Sequence record: MW248466.1
Reading direction: 5' to 3' (one strand)
Length of the DNA stretch: 64,000 nt
Positions 44,295 through 52,408 of the stretch are shown piece after piece. The translations under genes were made by a program, and so were the position numbers. The notes below the pieces were generated by a model. The model was not told the DNA's origin. It saw only the letters and a program-made list of their open reading frames with translations, and ran no database searches. How positions within the stretch are numbered: the stretch's first letter is position 1; every line of letters starts with the position of its first letter.

Positions 44295-44480
44295 ATTATC
44301 AAGTTAATGCTCCGTTGTATAGTGATATACAGAAAGACAAATTTATTAATTGCTGGGATAATTCATTAATTAAATCAGCATCTTAAGAAATTAAGTTCAA
44401 CGACTAAATATAAATATACTTAATATAAAGTATAAGATATAGTCTAATCTTTATTAAATTAATAAAGACTAATAAAAATG
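44295..44480 (+). ncRNA. ORF-less group I intron (186 nt) in DNA polymerase
   Basis: P1 GAGU|AUUA/UAAUGCUC with U44294-G44309 wobble; AAUUGCUGGG (P4), AAUCAGCA, GUUCAACGACUA (P7), AAGAUAUAGUC; ends in G44480; splicing restores MKNEFLLDKQLTTDKKKTYA. Confidence 0.9.
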
Positions 44481-47971: not shown

Positions 47972-48005
47972 GCCATGTTAAGTTTATAGCTTAACATGGC
48001 TTTTA
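47972..48005 (+). terminator. intrinsic terminator-like hairpin
   Basis: GCCATGTTAAG...CTTAACATGGC + TTTT. Confidence 0.6.
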
Positions 48006-48054
48006 TATATTTATTTTTTTTTTTTATAAAATAAGATTGGAAGTGAAATGTTAG

Positions 48055-49216
48055 ATGAAAATAGATATGATCAACGTTGATCAAATTATTACAGCTTATG
48101 AAGCTAAAGAAGTTACAAACCCTATTTTCTTTGATTCAGGAACTTTACCTAAAGAAGACGGTTTATTCTCATATGAAATATTTGGTTTAATAGGTACTGA
48201 TGAAAGAAAGAATAATGTAGGTTGGATTAATCTAGGCGGTAAATACCTAAATCCTGTAGCTTATAAATCTATGAAAGAATTAGATAAAAATGTCGATTTA
48301 TGTATTCAGGGATCTGATTACTTTAAAATTGAAAAAGGGCAATTAGTTCCAGATGAAAATGGAGAAACTGGGTTAAATTTCTTATACGATAATTATGAAA
48401 ATCTTAAATTTAGAAAAAATGATTCTCGTATCCGAAATGAAAAAATTGATATGCTTAAAAATACTCCTAAAGATAGAATATTTACAGATAAATGGCCTGT
48501 AATACCTGCTTTCTATCGTGACTTTAACCCTAATGAAACTTCAGGAGAAATTCAGGATACTGAAGAAATAAATGATATGTATGCAAGTATCTTAAGATCT
48601 GTAGATTCAATTAGTTTTAATTCATTTGAATTTGTAGCTAATACGACTAAATATAATATTCAAAATAAATTATTTGAAATATATGTTAAATTAACTTCAG
48701 GTGAACTATCAGGTAAAACTGGTATGATGCAAAGAAATATTTTAGGTAAAACAGTAGATAATAGTACTCGTTCAGTTATTTCTTCACCTAAAATTAATTC
48801 AAATAAATGGAATGAAATGCAAATTGAATTCGGTCAATTAGGTGTTCCGTTAACTCAATTAATAACATTATTCTTACCTTTCTTTAGCAAATATATTATA
48901 GACTTTATTGAAATTCATAAAGATGCTTTCCAAACTGCTACTGGAACTGATGAAAAAGAATTATCGCTAGAAGAAGTATATGAACAATTTGATGATAAAT
49001 CTATTAAGAATATGTTAGAATTCTTTATTAAAGATCCTAATGAAAGATTTAGTCCTATATATGTAAATGACAGACAAGGTAAACGTCATAAAGTTAAATT
49101 ATTTGAAAATACTTTAGGCAGAACTTTTACTGTAATTGATTTACTTTATATAGCTGCTACAGAGATATGTGAAGATAAGCATGTAGTTTATTCGAGGTAC
49201 CCGATTGAAAATTTCC
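48055..49216 (+). CDS. rpoC: RNA polymerase beta' N-terminal subunit, exon 1
   Basis: DGLFSYEIFG, GWINL, PVIPAFYR, GKTGMMQRNILGKTVDNSTRSVIS, RYP; four exons join to 503 aa. Confidence 0.9.
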
Positions 49217-50692
49217 GTGCGAAGTGTTTCCCTATAAGTGCTTAAAGCATGAAATGGGATAGTTTTTATTTTATATAAAAATGAAACTTTAATAGAGATG
49301 ACTGGTAACGGTCACATAGACACCTACATGCATTGTGAGTAATTACTTTGTATGAAGCTAGGTAATATGGGTCATATATGGTGACGAATAGGAACTTCTT
49401 ATGATGTCCTTTAAAATGAAGAGAGTAGTTTGGAATGGTGAAATCTTCTTTAAGTGTTTTAAAGGGTAGAGGGAGCACCTAAGTATGATATACTATCTAT
49501 TAAGGAACGCTTGAGATCCAATAATTGTTTTAATATTGGAAGTCAGCAGACCATAGTAGCGTTGAAGCTTTGTAATAAAAGTGGAGCGAAGGGTCATAGT
49601 CAATAAAAGAAAACTTTTTTAATAGAAAACTTTTTTAATGAACAATAAGCTATTAAGATATAAAGGAATGATAGCTTATGAATATTAAAAAAATGAATCA
49701 AGATCAAAAAAATGAATGGTTTCAAAATAAATTAGATGAAAAATATGATTCTGATAATAGATTATTATTATTAAGTGATTATAAAACTACTCATGAAAAA
49801 GTTAAAATAAAGTGTTTAAAATGTGGTCATGAAGATATTAGGAGACCTGCAGTCTTAATTCAAGGAAATAGATGTTCTAGTTGTGGAAATAGAAAAAGAT
49901 ATACAACTAAAACACTACAAGAAAGATTTGATGAAGTTTATCCTAATGAATATGAAATTTTAGAAGAATATAATGGTCATATAAGAGATAAAATGAGAAT
50001 AAAACATATTCCTTGTGGGGAAATTCTTCATAAATCTCCCAATTCTATTTTAAATACTGGAAGAAAATGTCTAAAATGTTCTAAACTCAAAAAGAAATCT
50101 ATACAGGAAACACAAAATTTAATTGATAGTAAATTTAAGGAAAGAGAATTTACAATTGTTTCTGAAGAATATATTAATAAAGATACTCCATTAAATATTA
50201 AACATGAAAAATGTGGAAATATAATAAATATTTCATATACAAATATACGAAATGATGTTTTTTATTGTAAATATTGTAATAGAAGTAATGGAGAACTATT
50301 GGTAGCTAATATATTAGATGAGTTAGGCATTGATTATGAGATAGAATATAATCACGAAAAAGTTAAAAGTTTAAAAAATAGATATATGCCTTTTGATTTC
50401 TTCTTTAAAATTAATGGTAAAGAATGTGCAATTGAGTATGATGGAAGACAACATTTTGAAAAAGATTACATTGGTTTTAAAGATGAAAAATCATTTGAAG
50501 AAAGAGTCAAAAAAGATTTACTTAAAAATAAACTTTGTGAAGAAAATAATATTAATCTATTGAGAATCCGTTTTGATCAAAATAAAACTATTAGAAAAGA
50601 TATTTTTGAATTTATTGATGGAACGCTGTATGCGATGAAAGTCGCACGTACAGTGTGAAGCGGGGGAAAATCGTAAGATTACCTATCGCTAT
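49217..50692 (+). mobile_element. group II intron (1476 nt, no RT) in RNAP beta' gene
   Basis: 5' GUGCGA at 49217; 34-nt domain V ACGCUGUAUGCGAU-GAAA-GUCGCACGUACAGUGU (50623-50656); domain VI with bulged A50685; 3' ...AU; removal restores RYPIENFLNVAPAKIKILT. Confidence 0.9.
49678..50658 (+). CDS. intron-encoded putative homing endonuclease (Zn-ribbon repeats + Vsr-like/EDxHD-type nuclease)
   Basis: Three repeated CxxCG/HxxCG...CxxC units; C-terminal GE..VANIL...PFDFF...AIEYDGRQHF...DLLKN...NINLLRI; RBS AAAGGA. Confidence 0.8.
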   Translation: MNIKKMNQDQKNEWFQNKLDEKYDSDNRLLLLSDYKTTHEKVKIKCLKCGHEDIRRPAVLIQGNRCSSCGNRKRYTTKTLQERFDEVYPNEYEILEEYNGHIRDKMRIKHIPCGEILHKSPNSILNTGRKCLKCSKLKKKSIQETQNLIDSKFKEREFTIVSEEYINKDTPLNIKHEKCGNIINISYTNIRNDVFYCKYCNRSNGELLVANILDELGIDYEIEYNHEKVKSLKNRYMPFDFFFKINGKECAIEYDGRQHFEKDYIGFKDEKSFEERVKKDLLKNKLCEENNINLLRIRFDQNKTIRKDIFEFIDGTLYAMKVARTV

Positions 50693-50883
50693 TAAATGTC
50701 GCACCTGCTAAAATTAAAATACTAACTACCGTTGATACAATTCCAGAAATTACTTTAGATGATATTGTACTTAAAGATTATCCTAAAGTTGTTCATGAAT
50801 ATCCTGTTGATGAAGATGTATTTATAGATACTGCCATTATACACAATTCATATGCTGGAGCACTCGGTGCAGATTTTGACGGT
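50693..50883 (+). CDS. rpoC: RNAP beta' exon 2
   Basis: LNVAPAKIKILT...HNSYAGALGADFDG. Confidence 0.9.
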
Positions 50884-51041
50884 AAGTTATATTGCCGTAT
50901 TTAAATATTATTAATTGCTGGGAGAGATTATCATCTTAATCAGCATCACTACAAATAGTGTTCAACGACTAAATATAATATGCTTATTTAAAGTAAAGAT
51001 ATAGTCTGATCTATATTATCTTAATATAGATAACATAAATG
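50884..51041 (+). ncRNA. ORF-less group I intron (158 nt) inside the catalytic DFDG|D motif
   Basis: P1 ACGGU|AA/UUGCCGU with U-G wobble; AAUUGCUGGG, AAUCAGCA, UUCAACGACUA, AAGAUAUAGUC; terminal G51041. Confidence 0.9.
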
Positions 51042-51167
51042 GATATGATCTCTATAAGATCTCTTTGGACAGTAGAGGCTAATAAAGAAGCTAATAAACT
51101 TCTTAATAAGAAAACCAACTATCTAAACTACACTGGTAATTCAGTACGTAATTTGGGTAATGAGAGT
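51042..51167 (+). CDS. rpoC: RNAP beta' exon 3
   Basis: DMISIRSLWTVEANKEA...GNSVRNLGNES completes GADFDGDM. Confidence 0.9.
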
Positions 51168-51307
51168 AACATGCTTGTATGCTCTCAATAAATAATATTA
51201 ATTGCTGGAAAAATCTAATTAGATCAATCAGCATCAACTTCATATAAGTTGTTCAACGACTAAATATATTACTAAGAAGATATAGTCTAATTATCATAAA
51301 TAATATG
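51168..51307 (+). ncRNA. ORF-less group I intron (140 nt)
   Basis: P1 UGAGAGU|A/UGCUCUCA with U-G wobble; AAUUGCUGG, AAUCAGCA, UUCAACGACUA, AAGAUAUAGUC; P9 AUUAU/AUAAU; terminal G51307. Confidence 0.85.
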
Positions 51308-51340
51308 GTACAAGCTTTATACTCTTTAACTAAAGAATAA
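51308..51340 (+). CDS. rpoC: RNAP beta' exon 4
   Basis: VQALYSLTKE*; spliced GNESVQALYSLT resembles bacterial SQDVVLGLYYMT. Confidence 0.8.
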   Translation, partial: VQALYSLTKE

Positions 51341-51350
51341 TTTAAAAAAC

Positions 51351-51383
51351 AGAGGTAACGGACAATTATAGTTCGTTACCTCT
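51351..51383 (+). terminator. hairpin after beta' gene
   Basis: AGAGGTAACGGAC...GTTCGTTACCTCT. Confidence 0.55.
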
Positions 51384-51416
51384 ATTATATTGCAAAAATG
51401 CATTCAATAATATTTT

Positions 51417-51429
51417 AAATATATATTAT
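51417..51429 (+). promoter_or_regulatory. AAATATATATTAT motif (putative early promoter)
   Basis: Exact 13-mer. Confidence 0.6.
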
Positions 51430-51485
51430 AATTATGAAGTTGATAATTATTAATCAACTAATATAATAAAAAAGGATGGATTTAA

Positions 51486-51785
51486 ATGAATACAATCAAA
51501 ATAATGGATACAGAAATTCTACAGGAAGCTGTAGAAGGAAAAGAGAATAACGGTGGAGGTTACGAACATACTCGTACCGTTTTCGAATTCCAAGGAAAAC
51601 AAGGAGTTTTCGAAGACACTTCTTGTGGTGATTTCGGTAGCAGATTCTTCATGGAATGGGATGGAAAAATGACTATGTGGGGAAGTATGTTTGATAGTGA
51701 AGTCGAATACAGTGAATTCGATGAACAAGAACAATCAGAACTTCTAAACCATTTTAGAGTTCCTGTTTTTGAAGAAACAATCTAG
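51486..51785 (+). CDS. acidic hypothetical protein (99 aa), monocistronic
   Basis: Own promoter motif, RBS AAGGA, and terminator TCTAGGACATT/AATGTCCTAGA at 51781-51802. Confidence 0.75.
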   Translation: MNTIKIMDTEILQEAVEGKENNGGGYEHTRTVFEFQGKQGVFEDTSCGDFGSRFFMEWDGKMTMWGSMFDSEVEYSEFDEQEQSELLNHFRVPVFEETI

Positions 51786-51847
51786 GACATTAATGTCCTA
51801 GATTTCTTTTTATTTTTTTTTTTCTAAAAATATTTGATTTTGTATGT

Positions 51848-51860
51848 AAATATATATTAT
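51848..51860 (+). promoter_or_regulatory. AAATATATATTAT motif (putative early promoter) heading the tag-family array
   Basis: Exact 13-mer. Confidence 0.6.
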
Positions 51861-51925
51861 AAAAATAGATGTAATTAAGAATTACTTAATTAAAGAAGAA
51901 TTTAAATAAGGAAGTGTAAAAGGAT

Positions 51926-52408
51926 ATGATATACTATAAAAATAAAATAAATAATGAAATATATGAAGTTAATAATATTCATAGAAAGGATGATGCTTTT
52001 TATTATGTGTTTGGTAATGAATTTAAAAAAGAAAGAATGGAATTATATGAATCAGTGGGTAAAAAAATTGATTTATTTGATAAAGATAAAGGACATAAAG
52101 AATTAAACTTCCAATTAAATTATGACTCATCTAGATTATTTTTAGTTACACATATGAAATATGATAATAATAATCCTTTTGCACCTAAAGTAGTAGATTT
52201 AAAGAATCAAAATCTTGTCTCATCTGATTCTTCAGAAGATCTTTACTATATATTATATAAAAGAATGTGTAATGCAATAGATATACCTTTATTAAATTAT
52301 AATATATTATTAAAAGAATTTAATTTTGATAATGAAGACATATTTAAAATAATACCAGAAGATTGTAAAGAAGTAAAAGATTTTAAAATTAGAAATCTTT
52401 TTAAATAA
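51926..52408 (+). CDS. tag-family protein (paralog of 53136)
   Basis: Starts MIYYKNKINNEIYEV; ends EDCKEVKDFKIRNLFK. Confidence 0.8.
   Translation: MIYYKNKINNEIYEVNNIHRKDDAFYYVFGNEFKKERMELYESVGKKIDLFDKDKGHKELNFQLNYDSSRLFLVTHMKYDNNNPFAPKVVDLKNQNLVSSDSSEDLYYILYKRMCNAIDIPLLNYNILLKEFNFDNEDIFKIIPEDCKEVKDFKIRNLFK

Follow-up and report, generated by a model that had tools for sequence, protein, structure and literature searches.

How does a group II intron splice, and by what route does it spread, when the protein it encodes is a DNA endonuclease? A canonical mobile group II intron of bacteria such as Ll.LtrB carries the reverse transcriptase (RT)-maturase LtrA. The question is raised by an insert at positions 49217-50692 of a 64,000-nt stretch of record MW248466.1 (Staphylococcus phage MarsHill), which we call the window; blastn of 48000-52000 against 50,697 phage records gave a 100% match to MarsHill at record positions 110000-114000, so that a window position is the record position minus 62000, and the MarsHill features given for 48055-51340 lie on the plus strand. 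The insert interrupts CPT_MarsHill_113, which GenBank labels viral RNA polymerase beta-prime subunit and gives as three joined exons, and it holds the open reading frame (ORF) CPT_MarsHill_114, labelled homing endonuclease. The host gene is the essential virion RNA polymerase beta'-N gene of this S. aureus jumbo phage, and the insert sits in phase 1 of the codon that follows RYPIENF. The identity of its parts is essentially certain: 49217-50692 is a compact group IIB intron of bacterial type. Both the intron and the reading of an endonuclease in place of an RT are already known, having been published in 2025, and our analysis is a rediscovery of them.

The boundaries of the intron (1476 nt) follow from intron-less alleles in S6, SA1 and Madawaska, from Rfam matches described below and from the published coordinates. 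Exon 1 (48055-49216) ends in RYPIENF and the first base of a Leu codon and aligns with positions 1-1161 of the S6 coding sequence (CDS) at 96% identity; exon 2 (50693-50883, LNVAP...GADFDG) aligns with S6 positions 1162-1353. The aligned blocks run to 49215 on the upstream side and from 50692 to 50883 on the downstream side, and their one-base overlap reflects a silent T/C difference in the exon's final base. In S6 and SA1 the beta'-N gene is uninterrupted (1512 nt, 503 aa), and joining 49216 to 50693 gives ...RYPIENF|LNVAP..., the same as in their intron-less proteins. An earlier note on this DNA, made from the letters alone, had claimed that the beta' frame is exactly restored (ENF|LNVAP), and these alleles confirm it.

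The insert begins with GUGCGA (49217-49222) and ends with AU (50691-50692), in keeping with the GUGYG and AY boundaries of group II introns. An Rfam covariance-model search of both strands of the window returned RF00029 (group II domains V and VI) at 50621-50692, over the full model and with 57.1 bits, the gathering score being 40 (E = 1.4e-8). It was the sole Rfam family at gathering score in the window, the models of domains I-IV coming just below threshold. Domain V, the catalytic domain, occupies 34 nt (50623-50656) and forms 14 base pairs, of which none is mismatched and three are G.U wobbles, with a CGC triad at 50624-50626, a GAAA loop at 50637-50640 and an AC bulge at 50646-50647. Domain VI (50659-50690) contains a single bulged A, A50685, which lies 7 nt before the 3' splice site and is the branch-point candidate. 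Both domains were placed by the Rfam match and by folding; the 72-nt stretch that they form folds at -27.7 kcal/mol (z = -4.5), and none of 200 shuffles folds as well. The RF00029 score, the triad, the bulge, the loop and A50685 together make these group II domains V and VI, and the two ends, the domain V motifs and the bulged A all lie where the earlier note had seen them. Because the host gene is essential and the ribozyme intact and covarying, splicing is strongly implied.

Since Rfam at the gathering threshold gives domains V and VI alone, domain I was established by alignment to relatives. We aligned the 5' parts of six introns, whose homology is clear: those of MarsHill and AR9, the ORF-less intron of Internexus, the metagenomic introns L007 and L008 (found via the HEG, the homing endonuclease gene) and an intron in the S6 beta-subunit gene. 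RNAalifold predicted 45 pairs on this alignment, 27 of which are still paired through changes on both sides. Domain I spans 49217-49513, with a closing helix of about 49221-49228 with 49506-49512. Within it, UAUGG (49377-49381) and CCUAAG (49478-49483) form the 11-nt GAAA-tetraloop receptor (zeta; 49377-49483), which encloses the hairpin with exon-binding site 1 (EBS1). Both halves are kept in all six introns and lie within the D1D4-3 Rfam match, and the receptor is the expected docking site of the domain V loop. EBS1 (GGAAU, 49432-49436) stands in the terminal loop of hairpin 49421-49452; its partner, intron-binding site 1 (IBS1), is UUCC at 49213-49216 in exon 1. The MarsHill loop, UGGAAUG, allows 4 bp (GGAA/UUCC), or 5 bp with the last exon base unpaired. 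The assignment is backed by covariation in the five related introns, where EBS1 and IBS1 read GGUACUG/CAGUAUC in AR9, GGGAAUU/AAUUUCC in L007, GGUAUC/GAUAUC in L008 and GUAGAC/GUCUAC in the S6 beta intron. A perfect-looking candidate, GGAAGU at 49538, was rejected as EBS1, for it sits in the 3' strand of domain II or the junction J2-3, outside domain I.

The rest of the scaffold is small. Domain II is a minimal hairpin (49517-49540) and domain III follows at 49549-49595; both come from a minimum free energy (MFE) fold made without the ORF interior and are strongly conserved in the alignment, their boundaries being approximate. Domain IV (49599-50619) has a basal stem of 49599-49625 with 50588-50619 in the MFE fold and carries the endonuclease gene in its loop. 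The MarsHill intron is trimmed relative to the other introns: missing from it are about 45 nt in one segment of domain I, the 24-nt hairpin that follows EBS1, and 13 nt from domain VI. In the leader of domain IV we also observed a tandem direct repeat, GAAAACTTTTTTAAT, at 49609-49623 and 49625-49639, whose first copy pairs with the 3' end of the ORF in the predicted domain IV stem.

The HEG itself occupies 49678-50658 and encodes 326 aa behind a ribosome-binding site (RBS), AAGGAA, at 49663-49668. Its product consists of three Zn-ribbon repeats (residues ~9-203), one of the form CxxC...CxxC and two of the form HxxC...CxxC, followed by an EDxHD/Vsr-like nuclease (~204-313) that contains IEYDGRQH; the three Cys/His units and the EYDGRQH nuclease reported earlier are thus both present. 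No match to the Pfam families RVT_1, GIIM or Intron_maturas2 was found in the 326-aa ORF even at E<=10, in agreement with the claim that it has no RT or maturase domain. The ORF matches PHROG 559 (E = 5e-60) and, weakly and below threshold, the Pfam families DUF2726 and DUF4379; its homologues carry PF14311, PF05265 and PF21817. No paralogue was found elsewhere in the window.

To place the nuclease we turned to structure. AlphaFold2 modelling from a 44-sequence alignment reached a confidence (pLDDT) of 92 over the full length of the protein and of 92.3 for its nuclease part (residues 199-326). With the nuclease domain alone, the top Foldseek match was 3r3p_B, the endonuclease I-Bth0305I (prob 1.00; template-modelling (TM) score 0.56 by query and 0.71 by target; root-mean-square deviation 3.6), and the Vsr-like protein 3hrl was also among the matches. 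The full-length model returned weak, generic PD-(D/E)xK nuclease matches alone, I-Bth0305I surfacing only when the domain was modelled by itself, and single-sequence and profile searches of the PDB gave just weak matches to Zn-ribbon proteins, AbaSI, PvuRts1I and 3HRL. The structural matches point to an EDxHD/Vsr-like fold, as had been proposed, with the EDxHD prototype as best match. D240, E253, G256 and H259 never vary among the 44 homologues, and almost no variation is seen at E206, Q258, D280 and K283. The order E206/D240/H259/D280 fits the composite EDxHD motif, which in I-Bth0305I consists of E170, D196, H213 and D222 (PMC3239194).

The 3' end of the ORF has a double use: in the MFE fold it is also the 3' strand of domain IV and the whole of domain V. 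The earlier note was right about this overlap and not about its extent, as domain V corresponds to the last 11 codons plus the first base of the stop codon and not to 12 codons. The ORFs of the four relatives with a HEG end just upstream of domain V, at the UGA of UGAUGGAA, a sequence that does not vary among the six aligned introns, the ORF-less one of Internexus included. In MarsHill this UGA is out of frame and reading continues through domain V. Because the frame crosses the 3' strand of domain IV and domain V, translation of the HEG and folding of the ribozyme would be mutually exclusive on one RNA. At the other end of the gene we observed a predicted hairpin (49645-49655 with 49669-49679) whose stem includes the start codon and whose loop contains the RBS. 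Such a hairpin (49645-49679) could restrain translation of the endonuclease on folded pre-mRNA.

The closest relatives show the same combination of ribozyme and endonuclease. The closest HEG homologues, P0003 and P0004 (40-44% identity), lie inside group II introns whose domain V/VI matches come directly after the stop codon. The introns that contain the closest homologues are at the MarsHill site or 15 nt upstream of it, in beta'-N genes that are just 41-47% identical. The introns of AR9, Internexus and L007 occupy exactly the MarsHill insertion site and that of L008 lies 15 nt upstream. For more distant HEG homologues, a lineage-specific domain V/VI covariance model found an adjoining group II intron at none of the 80 best IMG/VR loci, so that only the closest relatives show the link with group II introns. 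The RYPIENF|LN stretch of beta'-N is a hot spot for introns: the metagenomic intron L008 (796-2316), with its HEG, lies 15 nt upstream of the MarsHill site 49216/49217, and a mini group I intron of phage Machias (L006:2667-2851) lies 10 nt upstream of it.

One of these relatives is the AR9/PBS1 intron in g145, with its HEG g147. It shares with the MarsHill intron the gene, the insertion point and the codon phase, a homologous ribozyme with the CGC triad, and a homologous HEG (34% identity, E = 3e-41); by blastn the similarity of the ribozymes is limited to domain V, the rest being too diverged. It differs in having a 7-bp EBS1, extra segments in domains I and VI, an ORF that stops before domain V and a host of the genus Bacillus. 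According to Korn et al. the mature mRNA sequences of the intron-containing AR9 genes were experimentally determined, which is the basis for taking this homologue to be spliced. Identity between the introns of AR9 and Internexus is 99% in the first 500 nt and 96.7% in the last 91 nt; what separates them is a clean indel of 961 nt in domain IV, the block that contains the HEG. The HEG is therefore a separable module. As the ORF-less Internexus intron stands at the same site of the same essential gene, it argues that splicing needs no intron-encoded protein.

If splicing makes the insert tolerable, how did it arrive? Phage Madawaska has a beta'-N protein 100% identical to that of MarsHill, and the group II intron is missing; a blastn search of 50,697 phage records likewise found none in other sequenced Staphylococcus jumbo phages. 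Comparison of the spliced CDS of the two phages shows 23 differences in 1512 positions, every one silent. The stretch from -22 to +38 around the group II junction holds ten of them (binomial P ~3e-8), 11 flank the next intron site and 2 fall in the first 1139 nt. Over the ten-position tract MarsHill agrees with the distant, intron-less SA1 at six positions, and S6 agrees with Madawaska at eight. SA1, a phage of S. lentus (L005:2157-2276), is identical to MarsHill from -11 to +25 nt of the exon junction (49190-49216 and 50693-50720 compared), and the intron-less Madawaska and S6 have four silent differences from MarsHill within the 11 nt following position 49215. Either SA1-like phages would be the natural donor or target background, or SA1 would have precisely lost the intron. 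Such a silent-site tract is what one would expect if flanking exon had been co-converted during double-strand-break (DSB) repair from a diverged donor. Bacterial retrohoming is not expected to convert both exon flanks. The absence of the intron from Madawaska and the silent differences on both sides of the site thus favour homing at the DNA level. The neighbouring site, GADFDG|D, is occupied in Madawaska by a group I intron that contains a HEG of the same family (26% identity, E = 3e-13).

An RT acting in trans was sought as well. A tblastn search of the same phage records with the RT of the group II intron of jumbo phage LPJP1, whose ORF carries RVT_1 and HNH domains, matched 53 records at E<=1e-3, none of them a Staphylococcus phage. 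MarsHill does encode an RT elsewhere in its genome, which is retron-like and belongs to a different system. Because the ORF has no RT or maturase domain and the search returned no group II RT homologue from a Staphylococcus phage, we class the element as a group II ribozyme and not as a retroelement. Maturase-free splicing, which the earlier note had put forward, is consistent with this result and with the ORF-less Internexus twin of the AR9 intron. Its further proposal, of a ribozyme invaded by a DNA endonuclease and homing in the manner of group I introns by DSB repair, agrees with the Madawaska comparison, with the silent-site tract and with Merk et al.

Taken together, we think it quite probable that a protein-independent IIB ribozyme renders the insertion harmless and that an EDxHD-type endonuclease spreads the unit by DSB-repair homing in mixed infections; the endonuclease activity and the homing itself we infer from sequence comparison. 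Domain I would fold, and GGAA of EBS1 would pair with the exon end UUCC; the GAAA loop of domain V would dock in the UAUGG/CCUAAG receptor; A50685 would attack the 5' splice site, and ligation of the exons would give ENF-LNV, apparently with no need for an intron-encoded protein. In domain IV a free-standing HEG, presumably translated from its own RBS, would replace the usual RT/maturase. In a mixed infection an allele of beta'-N without the intron would be bound by the three Zn-ribbon modules and cut by the Vsr-like (EDxHD) nuclease, and recombinational repair would copy the intron together with flanking exon sequence. In phage PhiPA3, the one case shown so far, the endonuclease of a group I intron in an RNA polymerase gene gives an advantage in co-infection by interference competition (PMC12908238), and by analogy the same could apply to MarsHill on top of homing. 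A fuller version, in which splicing in vivo has no dedicated protein cofactor, the endonuclease acts on uracil-containing DNA, both driving co-converting homing and damaging the essential RNA polymerase gene of co-infecting relatives that lack the intron, and the frame across domains IV and V serves as a switch between splicing and endonuclease, is one that we consider doubtful as a whole.

Several observations weigh against the proposed ribozyme and homing endonuclease. The EBS1-IBS1 pairing of MarsHill is just 4-5 bp, compared with 6-7 bp in relatives; EBS2/IBS2 and EBS3/IBS3 were looked for in the MarsHill intron and none was found; Merk et al. (PMC12350094) score the pseudoknot evidence for it as '-'; and the Rfam matches of domains I-IV are sub-threshold, at 31.8 bits against 32 and 26 against 35. 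On the side of the protein, the Foldseek E-value for I-Bth0305I is just 1e-2, a sequence profile of the ORF searched against the PDB did not retrieve I-Bth0305I (3R3P) at E<=10, and the catalytic residues were mapped by order and spacing. The cluster of silent sites could stem from a recombination patch unrelated to the endonuclease, and the search for a group II RT covered phage records.

Does the intron move at all? It might be an immobile, vertically inherited passenger whose endonuclease is inactive or kept for another job, as a splicing cofactor or a weapon against intron-less relatives in co-infection. The weakened EBS1 would suit such a passenger, as would an ORF that has drifted into a frame through domain V where relatives stop at a conserved UGA before it, and an intron found in just one of about ten sequenced Staphylococcus jumbo phages; the interference competition of the PhiPA3 intron HEG (PMC12908238) gives the repurposed endonuclease a precedent. 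We nevertheless regard this as unlikely. The confidently modelled protein retains every invariant nuclease residue and each of its three Zn units, and presence and absence in near-identical phages together with a two-sided silent-site cluster indicate a recent event at the DNA level. As to a splicing cofactor, the ORF-less twin in Internexus argues that splicing can do without the protein, and a role as weapon would supplement homing without replacing it.

Classical retrohoming, with an RT/maturase supplied in trans by the host, by another element or by the phage's own retron-like RT and with the endonuclease ORF incidental, would be in line with the trans mobilization of ORF-less group II introns that Merk et al. 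proposed for LPJP1 (PMC12350094), and the phage does possess that RT. It seems to us very improbable in view of the missing group II RT homologue in Staphylococcus phage records at E<=1e-3, of an EBS1 of 4-5 bp that is poor for RNA-guided target recognition, and of HEG and intron occurring together at one site across distant phages; nor would exon co-conversion on both sides be expected from it. Finally, the insert might stay unspliced and the gene be split into pieces that are translated separately, much as the RNA polymerase subunits of jumbo phages are naturally split into several genes. To this we give almost no credence: exon 2 has neither start codon nor RBS, unspliced exon 1 would meet a stop at 49243-49245 after 29 nt of intron, close relatives encode an uninterrupted 503-aa protein, the insert contains a complete and covarying ribozyme, and mature mRNAs were experimentally determined for AR9 (Korn et al.).

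The published account is that of Merk, Jones & Eddy (Nucleic Acids Research (NAR) 2025, PMC12350094), who applied the group II models of Rfam to the genomes of phages. In their Table S1 the entry for MW248466 MarsHill (viral RNA pol beta prime) gives an intron at 111217-112691 and an ORF at 111678-112655, with subtype B, triad CGC, GTGCG...AT and a HEG; these coordinates equal window positions 49217-50691/2 and denote the same locus. They describe four phage group II introns with ORFs that combine three to five CapR/DUF4379/DUF723-like repeats with a distant EDxHD/Vsr-like nuclease, a group with Zn-binding repeats of ~60 aa each and a nuclease of ~100 aa (PMC12350094). The MarsHill ORF belongs there by its three repeats, its weak DUF4379 match, the Pfam families of its homologues and as a named member. 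They also propose HEG-based homing for phage group II introns that carry a HEG (PMC12350094). Among the papers examined, none besides Merk et al. 2025 links EDxHD endonucleases to phage group II introns. The silent-site tract, the overlap of ORF and domain V and the third intron of the gene (see below) appear neither in the main text nor in Table S1 of PMC12350094. What is added here is the cluster of silent sites in the exons, the EBS1/IBS1 covariation, the nearly identical ORF-less twin of the AR9 intron and the lack of a group II RT match among Staphylococcus phage records.

Each half of the element has known counterparts. I-Bth0305I, from a group I intron in recA of a Bacillus phage (PMC3239194), is the best structural match of the nuclease, has E...D...H...D in an order that the conserved MarsHill residues appear to follow, and likewise has N-terminal DNA-binding repeats and a C-terminal nuclease; the MarsHill HEG differs from it in Zn-ribbon repeats instead of NUMOD/helix-turn-helix units, in its group II housing and in the lack of a significant sequence match. 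Group II introns with LAGLIDADG or GIY-YIG proteins, in fungal mitochondria and Thiomargarita (cited in PMC12350094), similarly have a DNA endonuclease for an RT and presumed DSB-repair homing; in MarsHill the endonuclease is of another family and the host is a phage with uracil-containing DNA. With Ll.LtrB and the intron that phage LPJP1 carries in its DNA polymerase gene the MarsHill intron shares the GUGYG 5' end, domains I-VI, the triad and the bulged A, but unlike them it has no RT, X/maturase or En domain, and its mobility would be DNA-based and not by retrohoming.

Downstream of the group II site the beta'-N gene holds two miniature group I introns, the second of which changes the deposited gene model. 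One of 158 nt (50884-51041) follows GADFDG and one of 140 nt (51168-51307), not annotated in GenBank, follows GNES; both are missing from S6 and SA1, and each has an exon U in front of it and G as its last base. P1 can form in both with a U.G pair at the splice site, exon ACGGU pairing with GCCGU in the 158-nt intron and exon GAGAGU with GCUCUC in the 140-nt intron. RF00028 (Intron_gpI) matches them over the whole model with 39.2 bits and 32.6 bits, respectively, both below the gathering score of 50; these matches appear only with a 451-nt slice, searches of stretches of at least 4 kb having missed both. The 140-nt intron has almost no P8, with 1 nt where the RF00028 model has 59. Among self-splicing group I introns the Azoarcus intron, at ~200 nt, is generally named as the smallest; if self-splicing, the two introns of MarsHill would be smaller.

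With exon 3 (51042-51167, DMISIRSLW...GNES), placed by alignment with intron-less relatives, and exon 4 (51308-51340, VQALYSLTKE and the stop), the beta'-N gene has four exons, compared with three in GenBank. Their join gives a 503-aa protein ending in ...NESVQALYSLTKE*, which is collinear with the proteins of S6 and SA1 and has 100% identity with that of Madawaska. The GenBank model of CPT_MarsHill_113 ends at 51191, at a stop inside the 140-nt intron (...NESNMLVCSQ*), and the deposited beta'-N model of Machias (L006:3330-3450) likewise misses the last intron and stops inside it; the C-termini of both are wrong in GenBank. With the 140-nt intron as query, blastn gave 130 matches, in six Staphylococcus jumbo phages only (MarsHill 10, LY01 33, Machias 28, AH12 28, PB50 19, Madawaska 12), and none in S6, DC4, PALS_2, SA1 or other phage records. 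A third copy in the window lies inside the DNA polymerase gene, where its core (44348-44444) alone could be defined, an intron-less homologue being lacking. All three copies in the window are without an ORF.

For phage biology, the main discovery is a published one: phages carry group II introns, and in some of them a DNA homing endonuclease has replaced the RT. Our contribution is confirmation and detail, and not discovery. MarsHill and Madawaska, with their identical beta'-N proteins, form a natural pair with and without the intron, on which endonuclease-driven homing of a group II intron could be put to a direct test.

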